From Magallana gigas (lineage: Eukaryota): a DNA stretch of 64,000 nucleotides. The notes under the pieces are model-generated. The model ran no database searches. It was not told where the DNA came from and saw only the letters and a list, made by a program, of their open reading frames with translations. This document shows, piece by piece, positions 1 through 26,300 of this stretch. Position 1 is the stretch's first letter. Each line of letters starts with the position of its first letter. The DNA lies in the NCBI RefSeq assembly GCF_963853765.1, contig NC_088859.1, forward strand, positions 49,104,001 through 49,168,000. The letters run 5' to 3'. Made by a program: the position numbers and the translations under genes.

Positions 1-680
1 TATTTTGCTTGAAATGTACCAATTTTGCACATTTTTTAAACTTCTGCCCTAGGGATTTCTTTTTCTGTTCTACATATTAAAGTTATTGCTAAAAGGCATC
101 AAATCGTCAAATAAAAAAAACCCTTTTACCTCCTGGTTTGTTCCACGGGTCTTATCAAAGTTATTTTTTAGATGCCCAATTTCCCAGTTTGTCAGATAAT
201 GACTATTGTTTATTCGACAAAGACGGAAGTGGTGATCTTTATTGTATTATTAAAACATTCAGACATATTTAAGTAATAAATAAATATATAACATAACATA
301 TTAAGGGTCATTAATATAAAATACATGGTTAATGTCTTGAAATAAATGAATTAAGCAGTATTTAGGCGGGTTAAGAACACGTGACAGAGGGCTAGGCTTG
401 CTGAACCCTCTTCACGTTTTCGACCCGAGCCCAAATATAGCTTATACCTTGAGACATTAATGTTTATTCCACAATATGGTATCAATTTTACGCATCAAAC
501 GAGCTATTTTCAACAAATTTCGCTAAATAGCTGCAGTTGAAACTATCACGCCATGGCGTCAACAAAGCAAAAAGATGACGTCACAATACAAATGAAACGC
601 TGCGCGAAAGCGTGCGTACTCGTTCTGTACTCGGCCTCGTTAAGTTACCTCCATAGCAGATATCCCACTCCTCAATGTTG
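1..680 (+). repeat. Repeat segment A, copy 1 (runs off window start); inverted copy at about 1540-2230
   Basis: 556-643 (GGCGTCAACAAAGC...GTACTCGGCCTCGTTAAG) is the near reverse complement of 1561-1650. Similarity continues back to position 1 (TTTTGCTTGAAATG vs CATTTCAAGCAAAA at about 2217-2230). Confidence 0.85.
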
Positions 681-769
681 TTGTATCAAGATTTTCTTGA
701 GAAGTATATCATTGAAATCTGTAGACAAAACAAACTTAAAAAATACAAAGATAATGGGGGATCAGTATC

Positions 770-1415
770 TTAATTTGACCTTTTTGCACCTAAAATGCAA
801 TTTCATCCTGATTAGGATTTGTTGTCAGTATTTTTGATTAAGCAAACTTATTTCTTCAAATATTGTTTTTAATTATGCACAATGGTCACACTGAGTAGAG
901 GGATTTCGAAAAAAATTTGTACAAAGCTGCATAAATTTTTGTGTGACCTTTTTGCACTTAAAATAGACAATTTCTATAATAGTTACAATTTGATTTGAAA
1001 TAAAAACTTTTTGAATATCAAGAATTTTATAAGATTAATCCAGTTTGCCTAAATATGTATTCAGTATCATTTTGACATAATTTAACATGGGGGTCAGTGA
1101 TGTCAAATTTTAGATATAGGCCTTCAAAGGTAAAATTCTCGCAAAATTTGGCTTTAAAAAATTCAGACATGTTCTATATATATGCATGCCTTTATGCTAA
1201 ACGGCTATCACATTCTCAAGATTTGATTTTGTACATGTCACACAGAACCTATAAAATATGTTACAAACCTATCAAATGTTAAAAATGCGAATAACGAATA
1301 AAGTATAATAAAAAGAAAAGTATATTGAAAATTCATAAAATTGCTTGTCTCTGTCATTTTCGTCTAAAAAAACCTTCCGCACGAAAAAATAGTTCCCCAA
1401 AAGACTTGTTTGTTT
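770..1415 (+). repeat. Repeat segment B, copy 1; inverted copy at about 2400-3090
   Basis: TTAATTTGACCTTTTTGCACCTAAAATGC at about 770 matches the reverse complement of about 3060-3090. CTTCCGCACGAAAAAA at about 1373-1388 matches the reverse complement of about 2427-2442. Confidence 0.85.
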
Positions 1416-1565
1416 TTTGAATTCAAATGGATTTTCTTTATGAATGTTGTGTAATTATGAAATGATAATCTATCTTTGATGATTAAATAAATAAAATCAT
1501 ATTCATTTTAAATATAATGATCATCTGCGCAATGAAATCAAAACATGAGGAGTGAGATACCTTAA

Positions 1566-2397
1566 CGAGGCCGAGTACAGAACGAGTACGCACGCTTTCG
1601 CACAGCGTTTTATTTGTATTGTGACGTCATCTTTTTGCTTTGTTGACGTCATGGCGTGATAGTTTCAACTGCAGATATTCCGCGAAATTTGTTTAAAATA
1701 GCTCGTTTGATGCGTAAAATTGATATCATATTGTGGAATAAACATAAATGGCTCGATGTATAAGCTATATCTGGGCTGGGGTTGAAAACGTGAAGAGGGT
1801 TCAGCAAGCCTAGCCCTCTGTCACGTTTTCTTAACCCGCCTGTAATTATAGCTAAATCTATAAATTTCAAAACAGTAACCATGTATTTTATATAAATGAC
1901 CCTTAATATGTGATGTTATATATATTTATTTATTACTTAAATATGTCTGAATGTTTTAATAATACAATAAAGATCACCACTTCCGTCTTTGTCAAATAAA
2001 AAAATAGCCAATATCTGACAAACTGGGAAATTGGGCATACAAAAAACAACTTTGATAAGACCCCTGGAACAAACCAGGAGGTAAAAGGTTTTTTTTTTAC
2101 CATTTGATGCCTTTTAGCAATACACGTAACTTTAATATGCATAACAAAAAAAAGGAAATTCCTAGGGTGACAGTTTAAAAAAAAAATTAATAAAATAAAA
2201 TTTAAAAAAATTGACTCATTTCAAGCAAAACCCCATTGGGTCCTATGTTAAAAATTAACAAACTTTGAGATGACCCCTTAAACAAACGGTGTGGTAAATG
2301 TCTGTTTTTTATTTTAAAATTATAATTATATCAGTAGAAATTTATGTAAAAAATTAAATTCAAAAATCTAGGGCAGAACAAATTAGACCCGATCTCG
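1566..2397. mobile_element. Putative TTAA-bounded non-autonomous DNA element with short imperfect TIRs
   Basis: TTAA at 1562-1565 and 2398-2401. Ends read CGAGGCCGAGT and (reverse complement) CGAGATCGGGT. A second copy ends at 639 followed by TTAA. Superfamily not assignable. Confidence 0.4.
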
Positions 2398-3574
2398 TTA
2401 AGAAACAAACAGGATTTTGGAGAAACTTTTTTCGTGCGGAAGTTTTTTTTAGATGAAAATGACTAAACCAGGCAATTTCAGATATTTTCAAAATACTTTT
2501 CTTTTTATTATACTTTATTCATTATTCACATTTTTAACATTTGATAGGTTTTTGACGTGTTCTATATATCCTGTGTGACTTACAAAAAATTAAATTTTGA
2601 GAGTGATAAATGTTTGGCATGAAATCATGCAAACATATTGAAAAAGTCTTAATTTTTTAAAACCCAAATTTTGCAAAATTATACATGTACCCCTGAATCC
2701 ATATATCTTAAATTTGATATCACTGACCCCATGTTTTATTTTGTCAAAAAATACTGAAAACATACGTAGACAAACTGGATTAATCTTATAAAATTCCTGA
2801 TATTCAAAATGTTTTTATTTCAAGTCAAATTGTAACTATTATAGAAATTGCCTATTTTAAGTGTAAAAGTGTCACAAAAATATTTATGCAGCTTTGTACA
2901 TTTTTTCGTAATCCCTTTATTCAGTGTGGCTATTGCGCGCTATTATGCCTAATGATTTCATTAAAACAATACTATATCTGCGCGCTATTAAAAAGCAATG
3001 TCTGGAGAATATTGTTTGCTTATCACAAATAATGACAACAAATCCTAATGAGACTGAAATGGCATTTTAGGTGCAAAAAGATCAAATTAAATTGGCCATA
3101 ACTCATAGGGATGAACACTGACCTCCCATTATCTTTGTATTTTTTATTTATTCACAGAGAAGAACAATCAAAGTTCCCATTAATAGGATTAAAATTATAT
3201 CCAATAATAGAATATATAAAATATTTCATATTAGAAGTCATTGGACAATGCTTTGCCCTGCGTATGATATCTTCGAATTGGTATTTTTTCACATTTGCTG
3301 ATTATATACTTATTGATGAAATAAAATGTCTTTCAACCGCTTTTCTGATACTAATTATTAAAATGTTTTTCGATCGCTTTACATTAGTATGCAAGTTAGA
3401 AATGCTGAGGTGGATTGAAAATACATTTCCTATAAGTTCAGTTTCAATCCAATGTTTTCTCAGACGTCCGTGTCAATTTGTTCCCGCCCATTTCAAATGA
3501 GTGAAACTGACGTAAGCTGTATATTTCCAAGCTTGCCAGTTAATGTTCCGCGGTCTTATATTTCTATATATATG

Positions 3575-3930
3575 TAAAACTTGACCCCCCCCCCCCATCG
3601 AGGACTTACCCTACCCCTTGGGACCATGATTTAAACAGACTTGAGTCTTCACTTCCTGGGATAGTTTTCACAGTTTCAAATTTCAGCTTTTCTGGCAGAC
3701 TAGTTTCTGAGAAGATTTATTTTTCAGAACTACCAATAAAGTTTCAGAAATTCTAAATTATCTCCCTTTTCAAGAAGGCGTAGCCCTTAATTTGAATAAA
3801 CTTGAATTCCCCTCATCCAATGATGCGTTTTGCGAAGTTTGGTTGAAACTGGCTCCGTGGTACTGGAGAAGATGAAAATATGAAAAGTTTACCACGACAA
3901 CGACAACCAACGGACAAAAGAGAAGCACAC
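3575..3930 (+). mobile_element. Partial Helentron-associated HINE / Cg170-type repeat
   Basis: Recognisable motifs CCATGATTTAAACAGACTTGA, CCCTTAATTTGAATAAACTTGAATTCCCCTCATCCAATGATGC and GGAGAAGATGAAAATATGAAAAGTTTAC followed by a GACAAC microsatellite. Family identity is recalled, not searched. Confidence 0.65.
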
Positions 3931-4515
3931 TTTAGAAATAATTTTGACCAAAGTCATGACAATACTCTTTTAATCGCCGATATACGTATATAAGCCAAAG
4001 ATTGCTTTATTACATTTTGAAGTTCAAATTCTAATATTGATGCCTAATGATTTCATTAAAACAATACTATATCTGGCTTCCATATAAAGTCAATAGCTGA
4101 TACAAATCTAATCTGTGGTTGTCAATAATAACTGATGGTATTCATTGAGTCATATTTTTATATAACATAACCATTACCACAAATCATGTATTCATGAGTT
4201 AAAACGTTCTTGTAGGAAGAATAAGGCAGACATACTAAATGAAAATATTTATTTGGATCGTTTCCAAAATAACATAACAATCACACGTTTGTGTAGTCAA
4301 AATACTTAACAAATAAACTGTGAACACAAATTTAGTGGTTTAAGTGAATAAAAACAAACATTTTCTAAAAAGAAATATACATTTAAAAGTATATTTTTAA
4401 TTTTTTACTTTTTGGAATTTTTAACTACTGTCTGTAGTTTACGAAAGTTAACAAATTCGATATGAACACATGCATCCTTTTGTTTTCTTCTTTTACCTTC
4501 TTTTACCTCCGAATA

Positions 4516-7500
4516 TTACTCCATGTCCATAACCCAAACATCCGATTTTAAAACGGACATAAATTCTGCCCGAAATTCCACATAATTATCATACGAGGTA
4601 GGTATCTCTAATACGCAACCGCATGTGTGTGCTATTACCCTTCTAGCAAAACCATCAAGGCTTGAAAACCGGACCCTTATTTCTTTCAACATCAAATCTG
4701 ATCCTGTGGAGAATCTCAAGAATTTTCCCAAAGCCTCTTTGTCCAGCTCTCGTATGAATCTTTGAAGATATCTCTTCATTTCTGCTCCTTTTTCTAGCAG
4801 GATTTCTGGGAAAGACAGTTTTTCTATGACTCGTCGATTGTTCGGTACTAGGTTTTTATAACATTCACAAAGCGCTGCTTCTGACATAAGACCATGCAAA
4901 TGAAGCTTGAATGAATCTATTACGAACATAGATTTTTGCACTATTTCCTTGTGGGAAATTTCCTTCACGATTGTTTCAATGTTGTCAGACGTAAGCAATC
5001 TCCTACAGTCATATGACTGCATTATTTCATTGAGCTCATCAAGATCCACTTTGTCAAACTCTGCCAAAGCTTGTTTCAGAACGGAAGCTTCAGATGGACT
5101 GACATAAGATAGAAACGTATCCTTCAAGTCTGTTTTTGCTTCTCCTACGATGCAGTATTCCATAAATGGACGAGCTATGTAGACGGGGAAATGTCCAAAT
5201 TCTTCAAATCCATATTTTATAATCTTCCCAACAGCTTCCCATTGCTGATGACCAAAGTCATGCCGTAAATAGGGAACCTTGCAGTCCTTACCAACTGTGC
5301 ACGTCGCGTAAAATTCTTCCCAGAATTCAGTCAAGCAGTCCCTTGTTACACCACCTTCATCCTGCGCTTGTTCAACCGAGCCATTTGGAAGGATCATCTG
5401 GATTTTAATTCTGCTGTTTGGTAACAATAATGTGTTGGAAAATGCCTCTAGCAGCTCTTTTAAGGCATGTCCCCTATGGACTCTTATAAGGACCTCATCC
5501 GACACAATCTCTTGATTATTGAGGTTTAACTGAACAATACCACTGTCATTGGGGTCAATACTGTAGATAACCTCTTCTTGCGTTCCGTCAGGCATTGTAA
5601 CTTGCATTGACCTGACAGTTCCAAAATAATCATGCAGATCAGGAAGTGTGTCACTGTCTGATTCATGAAAGGTCACATACTCTGAAGTGTGGAATCCAGA
5701 TGTACCAGGTATATCTTCCTGTGATAGTAGATGAGGGTTTGCAGATGTGCAAAGACCTGAAGGTCCTGGAATTTTAGACTTGTTGAAAGTCATGTTAGAT
5801 GCCTTGATGGATTGTTCACCTGAAGGGCCAGGTATATCAGGATCTGATACAAAATTCACATTCAAACTGCTGCTTGGACGCGAAGAGCAAGCTTTCTCAG
5901 ATTTGACGGCCATTGCTGCTTCTCTCTGAATACTGCTGTCATCTTCTGAATCCGAGTCTTGTGGGAGAGTAATTGGTTTCAAGTGTTTCTGACTTTTCCT
6001 TTTTTCATTTCTCTTTAGTTTTTTGGACTGATTCTCATTTTTTGGTTTTGTAAACAAATAATACCTGAGATTTTTCCTGTTAGTTTTTTTAAACAATTCT
6101 CCGATAGTTACATTGTCATCTAAAGGTTGAGATCTGAAGTCCGCCATGTCAAATTCTAGCTCTTCTTCTCGACCCTTTGATGATAATCCTTCCTGGAAAA
6201 ACATAGACTTTGCTCTCTCTAATAGATCTGCTTTTGTGAAACTTTTTGGCACAAAAATGTCATCCGTCCCTCCCCCTTTGTCGGATCTGACTTGAATATA
6301 GTCAGAGTTTTCAAAATGTTTCCACCCCATTTTTATCGTTCTTCCATTTTTCACGGCATTGCTGTTCCCTTTTAATGTTTTACGTCTTTTATCCTTAACA
6401 GTTTCGTCCTCACTCTCTGTGCTTTGTGATTCATCTTTTGAAGATCGCGCGTGCAGTTTTTTCTTTAACTTCTGTAGCAGAGATGTTTTTTTTAAATTTC
6501 CCGCCTTGGGAGTTGTTGATGTGGCTTTTGTACAAAACCGGCGAACTGCACATCTGTCTCCAAATTTGACGATGTATTTCGATAGATCTTCGTTGCTCAT
6601 TTCTGCTATTACATCTTTATCAATCTATAATAAGAAATATATTATTTAAGAATGATCTACAGAATGATTAAAATCATAGAAAGAGTACATTTGAGTGTTA
6701 AAATTCGTCTATAGTATGATATTTGTAACGACAATGCAGACGTGTTGTTATTTTGACACTTTGAAAATCATTGAAAACTCATTATTTTGAATTCATTTAT
6801 TTATTCATTATAAATTAAATTTATTTTTGTTACTATTCATTAGGTGCATTAATTTACTAAAATGATTTAACAGTGATGTATATCTACAACAAATAAATTT
6901 TTCTACTAGTTTTCTCAAAAAATCTAATTGTGTTCACATAACTTCTGAAAAAATACTAAGTTAAGCAAAAGAATACAATCATCAATTACTGAATACTGCC
7001 CTCAAGTGTGATAATAACATGTAGAAATGTTTATTTATTAAGAAACAGCGTTTAAATTATCATAATCCATACAATTAAAATGTGTTCATTGTTAAATGGT
7101 ATCTTATTTTATACTTCTATTATAGTTAAATGATTTAGTACTTTAATAAAGAAATCAGATTAGACAGAGAGAATAAATTTGTTTCCCTAGTTTTCACAAT
7201 TCACAAGGTCACAATAAACATTTGATCAATATAATGTTTTGTTATATTCAGTAGTATACTCTCACTATATAACTCTATGTAGACGATTAGTCAATAATTG
7301 TAATATTAGCTCGTCCGAAAAATATTGACCGGTCAATATTTTTTTTAATTACATACTTAGTAATAAATACAGTTTTTTTGCACATGTGATACAGATGACA
7401 TCACAAAATCCGTATCGGCCTCCGGGGCTGATACAGGTTATCAGCCCTCCAGGGCTGATACGGATCCGTATCGCACCCCTTGCGGAACTCCTCTGCCTTT

Positions 7501-9137
7501 TTTCGCTTCGGCATTTTTTCATGTTTACAGACGAAAAATAAAACATTTTCAGTTACAGTCGACATTTTTAAGAGCAGTTGAAAACTTCAAATGCTAGCAA
7601 ATGTTTTAAAGCAGTCAACTTTTAAAACCTGGTGAAATTCCGTTCTGTAGCTTCATGTTTGTTAAAACAAGAACTCATATTTTTATTAAATACATGTACA
7701 TGTCCAGACTTTTTCAAATGATATGAATAATCAATTTGTTCAAGTTGATGGGTTTTCTTTTTAAATTTATTACTAAGTATGTAATATAATAATAGATAGC
7801 CTTTTCCATATCACAGCTTGTATCAGCCCTCGACCAATATCAACCCTTGGGCCTTCGGCCCTCGGGCTGATATTGGAGTCTCGGGCTGATACAAGCTGTG
7901 ATATGGAAACGGGTATGTATTATTCTCTATATATTGACCGGCTCGGAATAATATCTTGAGAATATTCCCTTTATTTCAATTAATTGCTTCTGATTTGTTG
8001 ATTCGTAAACGATGACGTAAATAATTCTATGCAACACCAAAACAAGGTGACGTCATAATAGACAGTCAGTCAAGGCAAGTAAACAACGGACGCACAATGC
8101 GACGGTTTGGTATCATAACGGATATAAGGATTCGTGAATTATTACTGTGAAGTAAAATCAGGTAGAACATCAGTATGTTAATTCTTACGGGCGGCGGAAT
8201 ATCACCATTGACCGTTTGATGCCGAGGATATTTTGGTAATAAACTTTGAACAAATTGAATTCGTGAATTCATTGTTGAGCTGAGAAAATTATAGTGATCT
8301 GTTTTCAATTACTTTTTTGAATTTTGGAGTGTTTCCTCATATATTACACAACAAATGTTGACTGTGTTTTCGGGCAACATTGATTATATTAGCCCCCTTG
8401 GGACGAAAATATTTCCCTCCGCTTCGCGTCGGGCAATATTTCGTCCATCGGGGGCTAATATAATCAATGTTACCCTCAACCCAGTCAATATTTGTATAAT
8501 ATACAGTCAATATATCATCATATAATATACAATATCAAGATATTCTTGTGAAGAATATAAAATGTTTAAACAGAAAACCTTAAAACGTGTCTTGCCATTC
8601 TCATCTCTTATCAAATTTAATTTTCAAAATACTCAGTGCTAGGCTTATCGATATTACATTCGGATTTTCAAAGGGATGATATTAAGATGAAGATTAAATA
8701 ATGAATAGAATCATTTGTGTGCATAATAAATGTGGGGTGCGACAATCTTTAATTTAATAGTATGAGGATTACAGTTGTCAAAAACATCCTGGAAGTCAAC
8801 AAAACCATCAGAACCAACTGAATTTTAATTATAAGATATTTCAATCTGACAAATATTGTTTTGTGAAGATTAATTTGATATCATGTTTTTCATATTTAAA
8901 ATTTCAGGACTTTCTTTCATATTTATATATGGAGCTCTTCTAAATGCAACGTATATGCACCCCCCCCCCCCCCCCCAACCCTCTTAGTCTTTTATGCACA
9001 AATTGGAATCAGAGTAATTAACAAAGCAATATAAAAAAGTAGGATAAGAAACATCCAACCTTTTGATCCTTCATAGCTTCAATTTTTTCAGCCGGGATAC
9101 CTCGTTCTTCTAGGAAGTTTTCTAGTGATTCGTCCAT
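4516..9137 (-). CDS. HECT-domain E3 ubiquitin ligase-like protein (G2E3-like HECT) with N-terminal SAM-like and central ubiquitin-like regions, 728 aa, two coding exons
   Basis: Exons 9137-9060 (MDESLENFLEERGIPAEKIEAMKDQK, donor AAG|gttgga) and 6624-4516 (acceptor ttattatag|, IDKDVIAE-MSNEDL...). HECT motifs: DEGGVTRDCLTEFWEEF, FLRFSTGSD and the catalytic-type AHTCGCVLEIP. Candidate 5'UTR exon donor AAG|gtaagt at 10896/10895. Confidence 0.85.
7803..7909. mobile_element. Palindromic (hairpin) non-autonomous element, Crypton-like
   Basis: Perfect 27-bp arms 7803-7829 and 7883-7909 around a GGGCC-TTC-GGCCC loop. Related GGGCTGATAC repeats at about 7425-7462. The Crypton assignment is inference. 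Confidence 0.6.
8345..8500. mobile_element. Second palindromic hairpin element, Crypton-like
   Basis: Perfect 22-bp arms AACATTGATTATATTAGCCCCC (8376-8397) and its reverse complement (8450-8471), with a central GCTTCGC loop. Confidence 0.6.
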
Positions 9138-10959
9138 CTGTGGAAAAAATTGTCATCAATTTAAACAAGATGATTCCATTATTTTGCAATATTTTACTAA
9201 ATTGAGTTTTCTGAGACAATTTTCTTTAAGTACCGTCACTCTACCTTATCTACACATTTAAGCATACGCTAATGAAATGCTAAACTTAACAGCAAAACTT
9301 TATATCAATTGATAGTGTTTAAACTTTACTATACTAATTAAAAGTATTTTCCCCTATATTTTCAAAACAAAATTAGGATAAGATAAGATATATTCATTAA
9401 ATACAATTTATGGTAAAGCAAAATTACAAAAACATTTTCATTTATCTCCTACAATATATTTTTTTTAATCCATTTCTAAGAAAGACAACTTTACCAAGTC
9501 TAAGTATTTTCTTGACGCTTGTATCAAAAAAAGAGCTGGCTAAAAAGGCACCGCTATATTATGTTTTTAAAAATTGTTATAAACTTAAATTTGTAGGGCG
9601 ATGATATACAATAAAAACTAGTAGTTTGAAAATGTAAATGTAAGAATGAAGTTTTTTCCACCTATGAAATATTTTTACTTTTAATTTCTTTAAAACCAGC
9701 CATGTTGCTATGATGTCGCGATTATCGATAGATCATATTGTTTCATAAATTTGACGTCTGCTTATTTATTGTTAACAGCTGCAATTTGCAAAACAAACAG
9801 AAATCATTCACTTAGTTATGTATACATCTTATTATATTTTTCTGATGTAATCTAAGTTAATTAATACAGTATTTATTTTCAGTTTCATCATTCAAATATC
9901 ATGTTTGTACTCAAGTAATGGGAACTTCTGTCGTTTTCTTTCATGCACACGATACCCTAAATTTTTATTTTCGATATAAACCCATCGCCCTACAAAAGTT
10001 TTAGACAAAGAGTACATGTACCTGCTTTTGTTAATAAATGATGATATATATATATATACAATGTATATATGGGTTATATTATTTGATCCGTCGATTAGCT
10101 GATTGTGTAACATTTTGAGTGAGATACGATCCCCCAAACATGTCTTAACTTGACATTTGGTTTATACTTAAAAAATCATCAAGTCTACAATTAGTGAAAT
10201 CTAATCATATTGTAATAGTATTTTGCTTAACTTTTAGAATAGACAAATTTTGTCTTACTTCAGTAATTCAAGATAAGTATTCAATTTATAACAATTTGAG
10301 TTGACTATGAGTAGATTAAAATAACAATTTGAATTGTTTTTGGAAAACAAGTGACCTCACATGGTGCGGCTAAAAAATGCCTTGTGTATTTTATTAACTG
10401 GAAACCATCCATTAACTAAGTTCACACAGAACGCAAGGAAAACATAATTTTTACTGTATTTATCTCTGAATCCTTGAAAGTTTAAATGATAATAGATTTT
10501 AAGACCATATATGAAATATATAAACATTCCTTTTTTTTTGGAAGTTAAAGCTACTGATTTTTTTTCAGTGCAGTTTTCTAGCAATGATCCCATTTTTTTC
10601 TTATTTCTTAACTTCTTAAAATTATAAGCACGGAAAAGTACAAATGCTTGACAGATAACTTTAGTTACTTTGCAGTTATTTGGCAATTAAAATGTTTGTT
10701 TAAACTGCAGTCATGCATCCTTCAGAAAAAAGACAGGTTTCCGATATTTTGGGACACCCTGTATTAAAAAACAAATACATTTTTTTCATCCATTGAGAGT
10801 TTTAATGACGTTTCTTGTAAATTCAAGAATAAACCACGTATGAATATTGATCAATATATAACTAAAATTAATGTTAAACTACACTCGTGACTTACCTTTT
10901 TATGTAATGGCTTCCTCGATGACAGCCTCGCTTATAATATGGCTATCGCATAAATAAAT

Positions 10960-11446
10960 AAATTCGTTATATCGGTTTGCAAATTGAAATAACAATTTTA
11001 TAATTCGTTATATCAAATTTATTTATTTGTTATCACAGATTACACTTCGTGATAACGGATTAATAACATTGACATTTTGACACTGTTTAATTTGTTCCCA
11101 CAATTTATGGAATTTGTTATCACGAATTGGATGAAAATACGTTATAACAGATTTTAAAAAACCGAAAATACGAATTCAATCTTTGAAATAACGAATTCAA
11201 GAATTCGTTATTTCAAATTTAATTTGTTAAAACAGATTTCAAAATTTGAAATAACGAATTCAGCGAATTTGTTATAACAGATTAAATTCGTTATAACGAA
11301 TTCCAGGAATTCGTTATAACGAATTTAAATCGTTATAACGGATTCAACAATTCGTTATAACGATTTAAATTCGTTTTAACAAATTCAAGAATTCGTTATA
11401 TCAAATTCAAAAATATTTTTTAATAGGTCCTAAATGGGCTTCCGTA
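10960..11446. mobile_element. Orphan right terminus of an IS3EU-like (TAC..GTA) DNA transposon with a subterminal TTCGTTATAACGAA array
   Basis: The end read in reverse complement, TACGGAAGCCCATTTAGGACC, resembles the TIR TACGAAAGCCCATTGAGGTC of the complete element at 25884-28521. It is preceded by about 450 bp of degenerate tandem CGTTATAACG motifs. No left TIR found inside the window. Confidence 0.65.
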
Positions 11447-11924
11447 ATAGAGGTTATATTATCAATTATTAGAAAATACAACGCCAGGTGCATGTCGAAT
11501 AGAGCTCTGTTGAATTGCCTTAAACGTGACAATAACGGGCAATTGATTTGTTAGATATATTTATCAGAGATTATGACAAGTTGAAAAAAATTCTGTCACA
11601 TGAGGGAATGAAAACCATGTCATCTATGTCAAAAAGTATTCTAGCCCAACTCGCCTGTTCCATTCCGAAGCAATCGGTCATCTTCTTAGCTTTATTTACA
11701 TAGTTTAGTAATAATAAATGGATATCATATTTTCAGTCTCAAAATTAAATGATTAATTGGACCCATCAACTTAAAAGAAATTAGCCCGTCCGCATATGTA
11801 TCGGACAGTATGAACATTTTAAAACTAAAACTTTCAAATATGTGCATGATTGTACATTTAAACTGTGTAGATTAAGTTCCAGTTCAGATCAAAACTCTGA
11901 GGTTGGGGTCAATTCTCAACAGGA

Positions 11925-12789: not shown

Positions 12790-13180
12790 AATACAATCAC
12801 TACCCCATCAAAACGAGAACGAATCCTCTAACAGATACGTACATCATATCCCCACCAAAATAAGGATACATTCCCCAGCCCATCAAAACATTAATTGATA
12901 CATTCCCTACCCCATCAAAACATTGATACAATCCCTACCCCATCAACACAATGATACATCCCCATATCCCATCAAAACAATTATAAATCCCTAACCTCAA
13001 CAAAACGGGATTAATACACTCCATATTTCACCAGAACAAGGATACAACTATTACATTGAAATAATTATACATTCCCTATATCCTATGAAAACAAAAGGGA
13101 CCACCCCTTAATTTGTGAGAACTGGATTACACCTGTATCCTATCAAATATCAAAATATGCATCCCCTACAAAATCAAAAC
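12790..13180 (+). repeat. Degenerate 5' portion of the 29-bp satellite
   Basis: Units such as AAAATAAGGATACATTCCCCAGCCCATCAAAAC match the main array consensus. Confidence 0.7.
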
Positions 13181-13186
13181 AACAAT

Positions 13187-14500
13187 TAAGTCTCCCAAAG
13201 TTTGGAGACTGATTGTTCTTGTACGGTTTCTTCTTTTTCTTCTTTCCCGCTCTGAACTTGTCCGTCATGTTTCTCAGAGATGGCTGAACAGAATTGTACA
13301 AAACTCTAGGATACGATAGGCCTGCATATCTAGATGTGCACGCTGGTTTGATTTTTTCTCATTTGGGGTTGGCCAACCATTTTTCTGGGGGTCAAAAGGT
13401 CGTGCGGTCTAACATTGAACCTTATGGGAAAAATCTTAGATTCTTTTGTAAATGGTAACTTGAAAACGGACAAAGATAATAATATAGTGTTTTCAGAATC
13501 ATATATTGACTGTTACAGGCAATATATAAGGTTTATTAGATCTTACCCCTGGGGTCATCCCCATCCCCAGGAATTGGAAATGACCATAGATCTCAGAAAC
13601 TGTTAGAATCCTGACCCCTAAATCATATATATTCTTGTTCCATGTGTTAAGGGTCAACAAATGGTATGTAGGTCATGGGTACCCGGGGTGGTCCTGACCC
13701 CCCCCCCCCCTCAAACAGGAAGTGCCCAAATAACTTAAAATGGTTAAGATCCCCACCCCTAAACCATATATATTCTTGTTCCTTGTGTCAAGGGGCATTA
13801 AATTACTATATAGTATATGTAGGTCATGGGCCAAGGGTTGGTTCTGACCCCTCTCAAACAGGAAGTGCCCGAATATCTTGAAAACGGTTAAGAACCCCAT
13901 CCCTTAACCATATATAATCTTGTTCCATGTGTTAAGGGGCATCAAATGGTATGTAGGTCATGGGCCCTGGGAGTGGTCCTGACCCCCTCAAACAGAGAGT
14001 GTCCGGATATCTTAAAAACGGTCGAGATCCCCACCCCTAAACCATATATATTCTTATTGCTTGTGTTATGGGGAATCACATGGTATGTAGGTCATGGGTC
14101 CCCAGGTGTGGTCCAGACCCCCTTAAAACAGGAAGTGCCCAAATAACTTGAAAATGGTTAAGATCCCCACCCCTAAACCATATATATTCTTTATCTTTGT
14201 GTCAAGGGGCATCAAATGGTATGTAGTTCATGGGCCCCGTGGATGGTCCTGACCCCTCTCAAACAGAAAGTGCCCGAATATCTTGAAAACGGTTAAGAAC
14301 CCCACCCGTAAACCATATATATTCTTGTTCCTTGGGTCATGTTGGTTCACCTGATGTATAGTAAAGGACCCCTGGGAAACATCATGAAACTTCAGAAATA
14401 AAAATAATCAAGTTCTAAATCTTTTTGTCTGTAAAGTTTGACCCGTGTGGGTCACCCCTACTCCCAATGATGGCCTCGTTCGTTTGGGAGACTTTATAAT
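13187..14500 (-). mobile_element. Helentron-associated HINE with about 5.5 internal ~135-bp tandem repeats
   Basis: Termini AAGTCTCCCAAAGTTTGGAGACT (hairpin) and TTTGGGAGACTT. Repeat unit starts AAACAGGAAGTGCC at 13713, 13856, 13990, 14126 and 14261. Confidence 0.75.
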
Positions 14501-14744
14501 CGCCCAAATTATAATTAAATCTTATTAAACTGTATGATAGGTTACTTTTGCCCCATGTTATTTTCGCATTTCTCCGCAAGCGATTTCGTCCCGTTTTGAA
14601 TTCGCCCAGTCAAAGTTGTGTTTTAAGAAAGATAACTTTAGCCATTGGAATTTGTACAGTCTGAAATTCGCGCATTGACAATGATGGGGAAAGAGTAAAA
14701 AAATTAAAATGGGGTGAATATTTCACTGTTTACATTATCTTATT

Positions 14745-17700
14745 CTAAATCTAACCCCATCAAAACAAGGATACATTCCAAAACCCTATCAAATCAATTA
14801 GGATACATTACCAAGCCCCATCAACAAGGATACATTCCAAAACCCTATCAAAGCAAGGATACGTTCTTAACCTCATCAAAATAAGGGTACATTGCCAAGC
14901 CTTATCGAAAAGAGGATTCGATCATTCTCAAATCCAATCAAAACAAAGATACATTACCACCCCAATCAAAACAAGGATATATCCCCAAACCCTATCAAAG
15001 CAAGGATACATTCCAAACCCCATCAAAATAAAGGTACATTGCCAAACCTTATCGAAAAGAGAATTCATTCTCAAATCCAATCAAAATAAGGATACATTCC
15101 CAAACCGCATCAAAAGACGGATACATTCCCAAACCCCATCAAACAAGGATACATTCACAAACCCTATAAAAGCAAGGATACATTCCAAAAACCTGATCAG
15201 AATACTTAGTAAGGGTACATTGCCAAACCTTATCAAAAAGAGAATTCATTCTCAAATCCCATCAAAACAAGGATACATTCCCAAACCGCATCAAAAGAAG
15301 GATACATTCCCAAACCCCATCAAAAAAATGAAACATTTCCATTCAGATCAAAACAAGGATACATTCCAAGATCCTACAAAACAAGAATACATTCCCAAAC
15401 TCCATCAAAACAAGGATACATTTCAACACCCTATCAGAACAAGGATACATTCACAACCTTTATCAAAACAAGGGTACATTCCCTAACCTCATCAAACAAG
15501 GATGCATTCCCTAACCCTATCAAAACAAGGATACATTCCCAAACCCCATTAAAACAAAAATAAATTTCCAAACCCGATCAAAACAAGGATTCATTTCAAA
15601 ACCCTATCAGAACAAGGATACATTTCAAAACCCTATCAGAACAAGGATACATTTCAAAACCCCTTAAAATAAGGATACATTTCAAAATCCCATTAACACA
15701 ATGATACATTTCAAAACCCTATCAAAACAAGGATACGTACATTCCTAAACCCTGTCAAAACAATTATGATACCTTCCTAAACTCCCATTAAAATAAGGAT
15801 ACATTCAAAAACCCTATGAAAACAAGCTAGGATTCACAAACCCAACCACAACAAGGAAATATACATTCCTAAACCCTATCAAAACAAGGATACATTCAAA
15901 ACCCTATAAAAAATATAAGGATGCATTCCAAACTCTATCAAAATAATTAGGATACCTTACCAAACCCCATCAAAACAAGGAAACATTCTTAAACCCCATT
16001 AAAACAAGGATACATTCCCAATTCCCATCAAAACAAGGATATATTTCAAAACCCCATCAAAATAAGGATACATTTCAAAACCCCTTACAAACCAATATAT
16101 ATCTTTGAATTCCATAAATATAAGGATACTTTACAAAACCCAATCAAATCAAACTAATTAGGATACATTTCCAACCCCTATCAAAACAATTCTGATACCT
16201 TCCTAAACCCTCATTAAAATAAGGATACATTTAAAAAACCCATCAAAACAAGGATACATTCAAAACCCTATCAAAATAATTAGGATACCTTACCAAACTC
16301 TATCAAAACAAGAATACATTCCCAAACCCCATCGAAACAAGGATACATTCCCAATTCCCATCAAAACAAGGATACATTTCAAAGCCCCTAACAAACCAAT
16401 ATATATCTTTGAATCCAATGAATATAAAAATAAAACAAATCAAACTTCCAACCCCTATCAAAACAATTATGATACCTTCCTAAACCCACATCAAAACAAG
16501 GATACATTCCCAACCCCCATCAAAACAAGGGTATATTCCCCAACCCCATCAAAACAAGGATACATTCCCCAACCCCATCAAAACAAGGATACATTCCCCA
16601 ACCCCATCAAAACAACGATACATTTCAAAACCCCATCAAAACAAGGATACATTTCATAACCCTGTTTAAACCAGGATATATCTTTGAATCCCATGAATAT
16701 AAGGATACTTAACAAAACCCAATCAAATCAAACTAATAAATTAGGATACATTACAAAACCCAATCAAAACAATTATGATACCTTCCTAAACCCACATTAA
16801 AATAAGGATACATTCCTAAACCCCATCAAAACAAGGATACATTCAAAACCCTATCAAAATAATAAGCATACATTCTAAACCCAATCAAAATAATGAGGAT
16901 ACATTACCAAACTGTCAAAACAAGAATACATTCCCAAACCCCATCAACACAAGGGTACATTCCCAAACCCCATCAAAACAAGGGTACATTCCGAAATCCC
17001 ATCAACATAAGGATACATTTCAAAACCCCTTATCAACCAGGATATATATATTTCAAAACCCCATTAAAACAATTACGTTACATTCCTAAACCCCATAAAA
17101 ACAAGGATACATTTCAGAACCCCATCAAAACAAGCTAGGATACAATTTAAACCTCTTTCCGCTTCAGGGTGCATTCCCAAACCCAATCAAAACAATGACA
17201 CATTTCAAATCCCATCAAAACAAGGATACATCCCCAAACCCGATCAAAACAAGGATACATTTTCTAAATCCATCAGAACAAGGATACATTCTCAATCAAA
17301 TCAAAACAAGGATACATTCCCAAACCCCATCAAAACAAGAAATTATTCCCAAACCCCATCAAAACAAGGATACATTCCCAAACCCCATCAAAACAAGAAC
17401 ACATTCCCAAACTCTATCAAAACAAGAATACAATTTCTAACCCCATCAAAACAAGGATACATTTCCAAACTCCATCAAAACAAGGATACATTCCCTAACC
17501 CCATTAAATCAAGAATAGATTTCCAAACCCCATCAAAACAAGGATACATTCCCTCACACCATCAAAATAAGAATACTTTTTCAAACTCTATCAAACCAAG
17601 AATACATTCTCAAACCCTACTTTCCAAAACCCAATCAAATCAAATTAATTAGGATACATTTCCAAACCCCATCAAAACAAAGATACATTCCAAACCCCAT

Positions 17701-19365
17701 CAAAACAAACACAAGGATACATTTAAAAAATCCATTAAAACAAGGATACTTTTCAAAACCCTATCAAAACATGGATACGTACATTCCTAAACCCTATCAA
17801 AACAAATATGATACATGTACTTTCCTTAAACCCCATTAAAATATGGAAACATTTCAAAAACCTCTCAAAACAAGGAAACATTCAAAACCCTATTAACACA
17901 AGGATACATTCCAACCCTTTTAAAATAATTTGGATAGATTCACAAACCTCATCAAATTAAGAATAAATTCCTAAACCCTTTCAAAATGAGTTCTTTCCAA
18001 AACCCAATAAAATCAAAATAATAAGGATACATTCCCAAACTATATCATAACAATGATACATTCCCAAACCCCATCAAAAGAAGGGTACATTCCAAAACCT
18101 CATCAAAACAAGGATAAATTCCCAAACCCAATCAAAATAGGGATACATTTCAAAACCCCCTAAAAACCAGGAAATATATATTTCAAAACCCAATCAAAAT
18201 AATTATGTTACATTCCCAAACCCCATCAAAACGAGCATACATTTTAAACCTCTATCAAATTAAAAGAGGATAAATCCCCAAACCCTATCAAATCAATATG
18301 AATATTTTCCAAACCCGATCAAAACAAAATGGATATATTTCCAGACATTCCAAATCCCATCATAACAAGGATACATTCCCAAACCCCATCAAAACAAGGA
18401 TACATTAAAAAAAAAGGATACATTTCCAAACTCCATCAAAACAAGGATACATTCCCAAACCCCATCAAAACAACTATACATTAAAACAAGGATACATTCC
18501 CAAACCCCATCAAAACAACGATACATATCCAAACCTCATTAAAACAAGGATACATTCCCAAATCCCATCTAAACCAGGATACATTCCCAAACCCCATCAA
18601 AACAAGGATACATTCCCAAATCCCATCTAAACCAGGATACATTCCCAAACCCCATCAAAACAAGGATACATTCCCAAATCCCATCTAAACCAGGATACAT
18701 TCCCAAACCCCATCAAAACAAGGATACATATCCAAACCCCATCAAAACAAGGATACATTCCTAAACTCTATCAAAACAATTATGATACATTCCCAAATTC
18801 TATTAAAACGAGGAAACATTCCCAAACCCAATCAAAACAAGGATACATTCCCTAACCCCATTTAAAAGAGAATACATTCCCAAACCCCATCAAAAAAAGG
18901 AATATTCCCAAAGACCATCTATACCAGAATACTTTTCAAACTCCATCAAAACAAGGATACATTTCTAAACTTTATCAAAATTATGATACATTCCCAAATT
19001 CTATTTAAACAAGGATACATTCCAAACCCCATCAAAATAAGGAACATTCCCAAATCCCATCAAAACAAGAATACTTTTCAAACCCCATCAAAACAAGGAT
19101 ACATTCCTAAACCCCATCAAAACAAGGATACATTCCCAAATCCTATCAAAACAATTAAGATACTTTCCCAAACCCCTTAAAAACAAGGATATGTACATTC
19201 CTGAACCTCATCAAAATAAGGCCTTTCAAAAGGAGTTCTTTCTAAAACCCACTAAAATTAATAAATAATTTAGATACAGTCCCAAACTATATCATAACAA
19301 GGATACATTCCCAAATCCCATCAAAAGAAGGGTACATTCCCAAACCCAATCAAAAACTCTGTTTA
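14745..19365 (+). repeat. ~4.6-kb degenerate satellite, 29-bp consensus AAACCCCATCAAAACAAGGATACATTCCC
   Basis: Period of 29 is directly visible (e.g. 16490-16660). About 150 units with local higher-order block duplications. Confidence 0.95.
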
Positions 19366-23300: not shown

Positions 23301-26300
23301 AGTTCAACAAATATTTTCAAGTGAAATTAATCCACAATGGTATCCCATATATTAGAAATTGGTATTCATTAGAAACTAGTAAATTTCCTTCAATATATTG
23401 TGGCAATCTTGGATCATTTAGGGAAATTGCTTATACATGATGCATTTCTAATAAAAATCTTACATTCACAAATGTTTGAACAAAACTATAACACACTCTA
23501 TAGAAATTGCAGGTAATCACAATCAAAGCATTTGAATTTTTAAGAATGTAAGGTTCTTATTTTGTATGAAAAATACCAGTCTTTTCAAAATATTACCATA
23601 ATTGTTGCATGGTAACCTACCATCTGCATTTTGTGAGATATTCCCTGAGGCTTCATTGTCTTCAGACACTTTAGAACAACCAGCTACTTGTACATAATTT
23701 GTAAACAGTCTTTCTAAGACAAGCACCTATTAAAACAAATTATTTAAACAAAAAAGCACCATATATGCAGTATATAAAACATACATGTATATTCTGCTGT
23801 ATGTATCAAATGACTGCCAGCACTAATTATGATATCTAAACTTACATCTCCTTTAATGGTACCAAACTCTAGCAGGATTTGATCTTCATCGACCATGCTG
23901 CTTTGGATATCTTTGGTTTGGACTCTCCTGGGAAGACTTGGCAGTAATTCTGTCATATTTGTAGAGAATTCTCCAATCTTGTCAAATACACTGGAAACAC
24001 TTCTAATCATCTGAAAATACAGGTATATGTGTGTAAGTCAGGAAATAATCAAACTCTTCTTCGCAACAATTTTACATTTCCAAATACAGAAATGTTGATT
24101 TTACATGCATCTACTAAATTTACTGAACACCATATAGAGACATAAAGCTTGCTTTTGTACACATTCTGTAAAACTGTCAATGTGGATAATATTTTCCCCA
24201 TGCAAACACTTCAACACTTAGTGTTCGATCAAACAGTAAAAGATGACTTTGATGTCAAGCTGTTTACCTTTGTGAAAGGTTGTATGCTATCTGGAACCTT
24301 CCTGACAAATGCTATGTGGGCATTTCCATCATATGCCAAGAACTCCTTTATTTCTGGACTGCTGCAGACATCATCTTTCTCCAGGAGAGACTAAGAAACA
24401 AGAGCATCAGGATCAAACACAGGTCAGAAAAAATAACACTTGATAACACTGAGCCATGTTTACACTATAAATAATTGTTTTGTTCAGTCATTTCTTGTGG
24501 TAAAATTATAAACCATTATCATCTATAACTAATTTTTTAATCTTTCCTACAACACACATATAATTCAGTTTTGATGGCTGGGTTATACATGTACCAGTAT
24601 ACATTTTTTGCTTACTTTCATGAAATTTTCCAATGTATTCTTGCGCTTTTCAATACTGTTCTTATCCATATTTCCAAATGGTAAGGAAAGCCACTTAGTA
24701 AGTCCTTTTACATCTAGAAATAAACATATGTAAGTAAGAACTTTTGATACAGTAAGTTACTTGGAACTATAAAGTAATCTTTTTGTAGCATGCCTATTAT
24801 TGATAAACAGTTAGTTTATATCCCATAACATGGATATGTTAAATATTACATGTAATATGTATACATGATTGTGTTATTATATATGAATTTGATAAGTTTG
24901 AATCCCCCCCTCTCCTCCAGATCCACACAATTATTGTTATGTCACACCACTTATAAATAGGCACTGTCACACAGGTGTATAAACCTTCAGTTTCATTACA
25001 CCCAATTGCACACCTGAAATGTATGGCCAACATGTAGTACATTGTATTCCTTTCATGGTACAATCAGATTTTGTGCACTGATGCTTATTCTATGTGCATT
25101 TTCTGTTTGTAATTTTCATTAACCTGTATATTTGATGCCAGTATTCTCCTGGCTTGGAAAATGTGCCTAAAAAAATGGGATAATTTCATCTCCACCAAGT
25201 TACATAGCGATGTAAGATCTACATCCACAAATGAGACCTCTACAGCAAAATACTTAGAACTGTTAAGAGGTCTGCAGCTTATATATATTTATATATATCA
25301 ATCGCAGGTACCCGTATTCTCCAATCAAAGAGAAATATGTTGGACAATGCCTTTTACAAATAGTGGTAAGCTTTAAGAACTGACCTTTCAAGCTCTTTTT
25401 GTACTCAGGATTATCTTCTAATCTGTTTTGTAGGTTAATGAATTCTCTGAACCGCCGCTTCACCACATTGGTTCTGACTCTGGGGGTCCCTTGGTCCTCG
25501 TACACTGCGTCATACTGAAAGAAAAATATTACCGTCTACTTGCTAGATCTCAAGTCAAAATATTTACTGAGAGATATCTGGCTTCCCAAAAAAAAAAAAT
25601 TGAAAAAATTGATCAACATGTTTAGGTTCACCAGTTCCATAGTATATGATACAATTTGGTTCAATTCTAAGAATGAAATTCAACTATCCTTGGCATATAC
25701 ATGTAACATAAGATCGATTTTAAACATACATGTATGTTATGCAATGTTTGTCTTCAGCTTTTGGACTATTAATTTGTGACTGTTTTATATTTTACATTGG
25801 AGTATCTTGGGAGTTATTTTTTAAAACAGTCTGCAGAATGCAAATGATGAACTGGCTTTTGTGGATTCTACATTTTTGTGTTGTACGAAAGCCCATTGAG
25901 GTCATTTTCGTAGGTAAAATTTTTTTTTTTTTTCCGTGAATAAACGCAAAACTTTCGCGATATAACGCGTTAGTTTCGTAAAAAAAAACCGCGAAACTTT
26001 CGCAATATAACGCATAACTTTCGCGAATAAATGCGAAACTTTCGCGATATGACGCGTTAGTTTCGCAAATAAACGCGTAACTTTCGCAAATAAACACGAA
26101 ACTTTCGCGATATAACGCGTAACTTTCACAGATAAACACGAAACTTTCGCGATATAACGCGTAACTTTCGCGATATAACGCCTAACTTTCGTGAATAAAC
26201 GCGAAACTTTTGCGATATAACGCGTAAGTTTCGCGAATAAACACGAAACTTTTGCGGTTTAACGCGAAACTTTCGCGATTAAACGTGAAACTTTCATGAT

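Follow-up and report, generated by a model that had tools for sequence, protein, structure and literature searches.

The window analysed here, a stretch of 64,000 nucleotides of Magallana gigas (contig NC_088859.1, positions 49,104,001 to 49,168,000), very probably opens on the right part of an intact autonomous IS3EU/GingerRoot transposon with two convergent genes, one for a transposase and one for a ubiquitin ligase with SAM, ubiquitin-like and HECT domains that serves the element. This transposon, element E1, measures 20,723 bp (C7:49094724-49115446), its extent being given by a partner tip and by a second copy on C4. Window positions 1-11446 hold its right 11.4 kb; the remaining 9.3 kb, where the left inverted repeat and the transposase gene are found, precede window position 1. 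The ligase gene is part of the mobile unit, recurs and co-diverges with the transposase gene, and keeps the HECT fold and its catalytic cysteine. These results support a preliminary description of the locus, which had read from the window a spliced HECT ligase gene borne by an IS3EU-like DNA transposon. Since the ligase/transposase pair occurs in many families of this genome, in other bivalves and in fish, the ligase is a long-standing partner and not a chance passenger, and we infer that the protein is enzymatically active as an E3 and that the element makes it to its own advantage.

The ligase gene occupies window positions 4516-10944 on the minus strand and comprises three exons and 728 codons. 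Nearly all of the coding sequence lies in exon 3 (4516-6624; 702 codons and a stop), which encodes the end of the SAM domain, the ubiquitin-like domain, an acidic, low-complexity linker and the HECT domain; it holds an open reading frame (ORF) of 694 amino acids (4516-6600, minus strand) and the frame stays open for a further eight codons, to 6624. Intron 2 (6625-9059) separates it from exon 2 (9060-9137), which opens exactly at an ATG behind the acceptor ccacag and encodes the first half of the SAM domain in 26 in-phase codons; added to the 8 and the 694, these yield the 728-codon model (the exons were translated and searched one by one and the spliced coding sequence was not joined). Beyond intron 1 (9138-10895) lies a non-coding leader exon of 49 nt (10896-10944, minus strand), inside the right inverted repeat of E1 and seen in a contig of run X1. 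An intact frame of this length, mostly in one exon, had been proposed from the letters of the window, as had both splices, and each was borne out: junction 6624^9060 (CT..AC on the plus strand, GT..AG on the minus) was present in contigs of runs X9 and X1, and junction 9137^10896 (GT..AG on the minus strand) in the X1 contig only, so that exon 2 is joined on both sides. X9 is RNA on record and X1 is RNA by guess. An X9 contig also extends from 9137 to 9443, intron 1 thus being at least partly retained. The donor AAG/GTAAGT is present at 10896 as described, although not inside the subterminal repeat array as had been stated: it lies just inward of the innermost units, yet well within the ~760-bp inverted repeat. 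A repeat within intron 2 (~7239-8631) showed very high depth in all four RNA runs, with many loose ends, and belongs to an unrelated, strongly transcribed family.

At the sequence level the HECT domain of the ligase is a divergent branch, with 12-16% identity to solved HECT domains; a sequence search of the PDB with the C-terminal half of the protein returned nothing useful. An AlphaFold model of residues 300-694, built with 18 homologues, reached a mean pLDDT (predicted local distance difference test score) of 80.5 and in a fold search matched at least 105 solved HECT chains at E ≤ 0.001 (UBR5, 1.7e-12; HUWE1, 9e-12), the matches spanning ~380 columns and both lobes. Several homologues of the ligase bear precomputed PF00632 matches, and the nearest atlas clusters carry names of the HUWE1, UBR5 or NEDD4-family type or 'G2/M phase-specific E3 ubiquitin-protein ligase-like'. 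The catalytic cysteine is residue 660 of the 694-residue ORF, 34 residues before the C-terminus. Further upstream, residues ~86-190 adopt a ubiquitin-like beta-grasp fold (best match E 4.7e-4; nearly all of the top 50 matches are ubiquitin-like proteins), and exon 2 together with the first ~25 residues of the ORF aligns with a SAM-type N-terminal extension of fish and oyster homologues. Because of this alignment, the beta-grasp fold and the HECT fold matches, the order of the architecture is SAM, ubiquitin-like domain, acidic linker and HECT.

A protein of this kind might be a catalytically silent scaffold that retains the HECT fold in order to bind ubiquitin, an E2 or the transposase and not to carry out ligation. 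The great divergence of the sequence, with Pfam HECT scores below threshold, speaks for this, as does the tail (...VWVMDME), which shows no evident counterpart of the phenylalanine that NEDD4-type HECT domains usually have close to the C-terminus; for G2E3, a cellular protein, the HECT domain is reported not to act as a classical ligase. Nevertheless, the H-T-C motif with the catalytic cysteine is invariant in 18 of 18 sequences spanning bivalves and fish, as are the flanking residues, which is hard to explain without catalysis, and the predicted HECT fold is complete with both lobes. We therefore consider a silent scaffold improbable.

The transposase gene runs rightward inside E1, before the window, and thus converges with the leftward ligase gene. 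Its exons (L011:5294-6105, 271 codons, and L011:6368-6700) encode ~381 amino acids in all; an acceptor lies 10 nt before the ATG, and the position of the donor (CAG/GTATAA) is conserved in oyster and fish copies. The protein matched the Pfam families rva_4 (E 2e-23) and rve (E 0.002), and its D, D and E residues are conserved across 9-10 elements. No conserved His/Cys pairs (HHCC zinc motif) were found in the N-terminal 120 residues of the transposase alignment.

Six-frame searches of the whole genome located 28 places where a transposase and a ligase lie at most ~10 kb apart, and the two are convergent in all 28. Ligase homologues thus do stand beside DDE integrase-core ORFs genome-wide, an association that the preliminary description had put forward for checking, and many copies have 6-bp duplications and inverted repeats of their own. 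Compared with E1, the paired families show 33-43% identity in the ligase and 47-55% in the transposase. Outside this genome, ligase homologues were found in Pinctada, Mytilus, three teleosts and metagenome contigs, with a convergent transposase beside the ligase at seven of the nine foreign loci (metagenomes were also sampled), including those of Pinctada and the three teleosts; at the locus of the fish Coilia this transposase is present but unannotated. Pairwise distances of transposase and ligase among ten elements were strongly correlated (Mantel r 0.92, p 2e-4, a value inflated by close pairs), and maximum-likelihood trees of the two proteins recovered the same supported clades with zero supported conflict. 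Between lineages the proportion of synonymous differences (pS) is saturated at 0.71-0.78, and that of non-synonymous differences (pN) is 0.17-0.27 for the ligase and 0.10-0.12 for the transposase; by this substitution pattern both genes are under purifying selection. Some IS3EU lineages may do without the ligase, as tentatively indicated by transposase matches of 38-41% identity with no ligase match nearby. One further homologue, of 631 amino acids and of the animal type, is encoded on a 10.8-kb contig (L043) labelled as a Candidatus Thiodiazotropha metagenome-assembled genome; this contig is probably host (bivalve) DNA mis-binned into that of the symbiont.

DNA transposons do take up host genes, and E1 holds ~10 kb of other non-coding material, so that the ligase might be thought a recently captured host gene and a passive passenger. 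This is very unlikely, since the same gene recurs in the same convergent position in families with no more than 42-55% identity between their transposases and in fish, the trees are congruent and pN lies far below pS; moreover, a search of the genome at E values up to 1e-3 gave no host HECT gene closer than the ligases of the transposons. Placing the ligase inside the element was correct in the preliminary description, whereas its word 'cargo' is too weak for a conserved second gene whose divergence has kept step with that of the transposase in different families and phyla.

The right tip of E1 (...GGGCTTCCGTA) terminates at 11446, and its 18 bases occur three times in the window as against none in 100 shuffles. 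It closes a right terminal inverted repeat of ~760 bp (10680-11446; tip ...CCTAAATGGGCTTCCGTA) that is ~90% identical to the left one. Repeat analysis delimited within it a subterminal array of units of the AATTCGTTATAACGAATT type (about 10940-11410); the palindromic ~19-21-bp units, mapped to 11175-11411, are probably binding sites of the transposase. The TAC..GTA terminus proposed at this position is thus real, and the left end and transposase expected beyond the window start were found, the former at C7:49094724 and the latter inside E1. A target-site duplication, ATAGAG(G), follows the right tip at 11447-11453, and the identical seven bases immediately precede the left tip; the six bases predicted to stand before the left end are there, with one extra G. 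In the left inverted repeat the leader exon has a mirror-image counterpart whose donor reads GTAAGG. The inner part of the inverted repeat, including the leader region, occurs at three genomic loci only (C7, C4 and one on C1), and thus both ends belong to one element type. The second copy of E1, on C4, is 96-97% identical along the full length, including both genes and their introns, and has one stop in each gene; the window copy is the sole intact autonomous member of the E1 family found in the genome.

Two independent insertions could by chance have bracketed a host ligase gene, the family being many-copied and clustered and the tip of another family lying 54 bp from the left tip of E1. This is scarcely credible in view of the identical 7-bp flanks, the ~760 bp shared by the two ends with an inner part confined to three loci, and the duplication of the entire 20-kb unit on C4. 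The neighbouring tip is that of a copy of a second autonomous family (C7:49085383-49094669), the only one of eight copies of that family without matching duplications (TAGAAC as against TTATAT). In the C4 copy of E1 (C4:15916001-15942000, join positions 3025-3921) the terminal ~540 bp are inverted in place, flanked by CGTGAC and, inverted, GTCACG, and the inverted piece abuts the tip of another copy. This arrangement resembles what an intramolecular transposition from an inside end, with a 6-bp staggered cut, would leave behind.

Relatives of E1 are abundant in the genome. The last 297 bases of its right end recur at least 40 times (93-97% identity), in many cases as two inverted copies separated by 2.9-6.2 kb, and the outer ~360 bp of the right inverted repeat match at least 40 short derivative copies at 91-97%. 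All ten short derivative pairs examined start with TACGG, end with CCGTA and are flanked by perfect 6-bp target duplications. These short paired copies of ~3-6 kb were considered as autonomous carriers and rejected, having no long ORF and interiors unrelated to window positions 1-11000; lacking such an ORF and sharing with the window only the outer ~360 bp, they are non-autonomous derivatives. Derivative elements often lie inside or adjoining autonomous copies, for example in a transposase gene at C7:36992762 and within a copy at C7:16463684. The second autonomous family (8.5-9.3 kb; tips TACGAAAGCC...GGCTTTCGTA) has ~99% identity between copies and perfect 6-bp duplications in seven of eight. 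The window itself contains a further ORF-less element of 2,638 bp (25884-28521), with tips TACGAAAGCCCATTGAGG...GTA and the perfect 6-bp duplication GTGTTG. Across E1, the short derivatives and this last element, tips start with TACGG or TACGA and end with CCGTA or TCGTA.

IS3EU/GingerRoot elements are defined by TA..TA termini (TAYGG..CCRTA in described families) and a 6-bp target duplication (PMC10045372, PMC12730594). The present elements show such termini, the 6-bp duplication (in the related copies) and a DDE integrase transposase of the IS3-IS481 type without an HHCC motif, and the IS3EU-like identity first proposed from the right terminus is thereby supported. That transposase and ligase form a domesticated host gene pair, immobile now, would accord with their conservation and selection across phyla, but is hardly tenable for genes present in many copies per genome, up to 99% identical, with their own 6-bp duplications and inverted repeats and with dozens of ORF-less derivatives sharing the same tips.

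As to how the ligase would serve the element, it is plausible, if tentative, that its SAM/ubiquitin-like N-terminus binds the transposase and that the HECT domain ubiquitinates it. Ubiquitination would either limit the level of transposase or clear a stable post-integration complex and so allow repair by the host to be completed. Alternatively, and in our view only slightly less probably, the ligase may mark a host silencing or repair factor for degradation. Control of the transposase and counter-defence against host silencing had both been put forward in the preliminary description and remain hypotheses. A complex prediction that paired ligase residues 1-230 with the transposase, each of whose two exons was entered as a chain of its own, scored 0.51 (best of three controls, 0.06), with contacts agreeing between runs to at least 36% and a partner pLDDT of at least 59. 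In the calibration of this score, 51 of 78 solved complexes attained the mark, as did 2 of 108 mismatched pairs; at scores of 0.60 or less it was attained by only 5 of the 78 solved complexes and by all 4 mismatches that passed. The model thus faintly suggests that the ligase contacts the transposase, and this gives a slight preference for binding and ubiquitination of the latter. Each inverted repeat would supply one of the two genes with a leader exon that points inward and has a splice donor, the mirror leader exon of the left repeat presumably serving the transposase gene.

Several observations weigh against this interpretation of E1. The ligase scored only 13.7 and 15.9 bits against Pfam HECT (PF00632), below the gathering cut-off of 23.9, and its E3 ligase activity is a prediction. 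No reads from the ligase exons were found in the polyA raw-read runs X21 and X22, of which ~1 in 100 was sampled in each, too thin a sample to judge expression. The X1 contig that carries the leader exon extends further upstream, into an exon of a gene located on a different chromosome, and it is no more than a possibility that the transposon end provides the promoter, as the preliminary description had suggested. The 28 nt past the leader exon are absent from the window and have a single genomic match (C2:15754949-15754976), an exon with a good donor, joined at a possible acceptor (AG at 10943-10944, minus strand). No E1-like sequence was found within 1.5 kb of this C2 exon, and the segment may reflect a polymorphic insertion in that animal, transcribed by read-through of a host gene, or else the contig may be chimeric. 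The match between the flanks of E1 is 7 bp, or 6 plus 1, where the family norm is exactly 6, and the rearranged end of the C4 copy leaves no duplication to be checked there. Lastly, measured against the calibration of its score, the ligase-transposase complex prediction is weak.

E1 owes part of its length to nested repeats, which have swollen the 8.8 kb separating its two genes. A high-copy repeat of ~910 bp between the genes (658-1565) is missing from the C4 copy and was thus inserted after transposition; it has at least 40 genomic copies at 93-95% identity and an older inverted copy at 2400-3146 (79%). Window positions 2-646 recur in inverted form at 1554-2402. To the right of E1, tandem arrays extend over 12845-19355, among them ~149 copies of a 29-bp unit with strong strand skew (14753-19191) and a 134-bp unit (13614-14334).

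E1 resembles published IS3EU/GingerRoot elements in its TA..TA tips (here TACGG..CCGTA), its 6-bp duplications and its DDE transposase, which has an N-terminal helix-turn-helix and is akin to the integrase cores of IS3/IS481, and both oyster and fish are already listed as hosts of this group (PMC6839031). It differs from them in that a ligase is here a constant second gene. In the library that we searched, no paper links IS3EU or GingerRoot with HECT or ubiquitin, and Repbase may already record the pairing. Fungal IS3EU families carry genes for an alpha-kinase and a TET/JBP dioxygenase; they share with E1 the TAYGG..CCRTA ends and an accessory gene opposite the transposase, whose proposed role in fungi is escape from host silencing (PMC12730594). 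Unlike in the oyster, their accessory genes encode a kinase or dioxygenase and not a HECT ligase, their hosts are fungi, and TET/JBP has moved between superfamilies, whereas the ligase has co-diverged with its transposase. Cellular HECT E3s (HUWE1, UBR5, the NEDD4 family) have the same two-lobed fold, with the catalytic cysteine 34 residues from the C-terminus in the present ligase, but differ in their N-terminal domains, and the transposon ligase is multi-copy and bounded by inverted repeats.

Transposons carry proteases, kinases and demethylases, and proteases of the ubiquitin and SUMO pathways occur in DNA transposons, ULP1 in some MULE and Ginger2 elements, OTU in Ginger1 and some Helitrons. 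These are likewise mobile elements with an enzyme of ubiquitin-like modification; their enzymes are deconjugating proteases, whereas the one described here is a HECT ligase (conjugating), with SAM and ubiquitin-like domains and encoded by a separate gene. To our knowledge, no HECT ligase has been described before as the standing partner of a transposase. A broader scheme can be put forward tentatively. An IS3EU/GingerRoot lineage would have kept a HECT ligase beside its transposase since before its acquisition by bivalves and vertebrates, and transposition would depend on this ligase, which would either ubiquitinate the transposase or the transpososome or eliminate a host factor that restricts the element. 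The mirrored leader exons in the inverted repeats would drive both genes, and a HECT ligase system encoded by a transposon would here be described for the first time.

Action of the ligase on the transposase would mean that a eukaryotic cut-and-paste element uses the ubiquitin system of its host to control or dismantle its own integration machinery; with a host factor as its target, the ligase would parallel, in a transposon, the E3 ligases of viruses. The young, ~99% identical family offers intact copies usable for direct transposition assays. For the annotation of bivalve and fish genomes, the finding means that predictions named 'HECT domain-containing' or 'G2E3-like' are at least partly transposon genes and not host E3 ligases.

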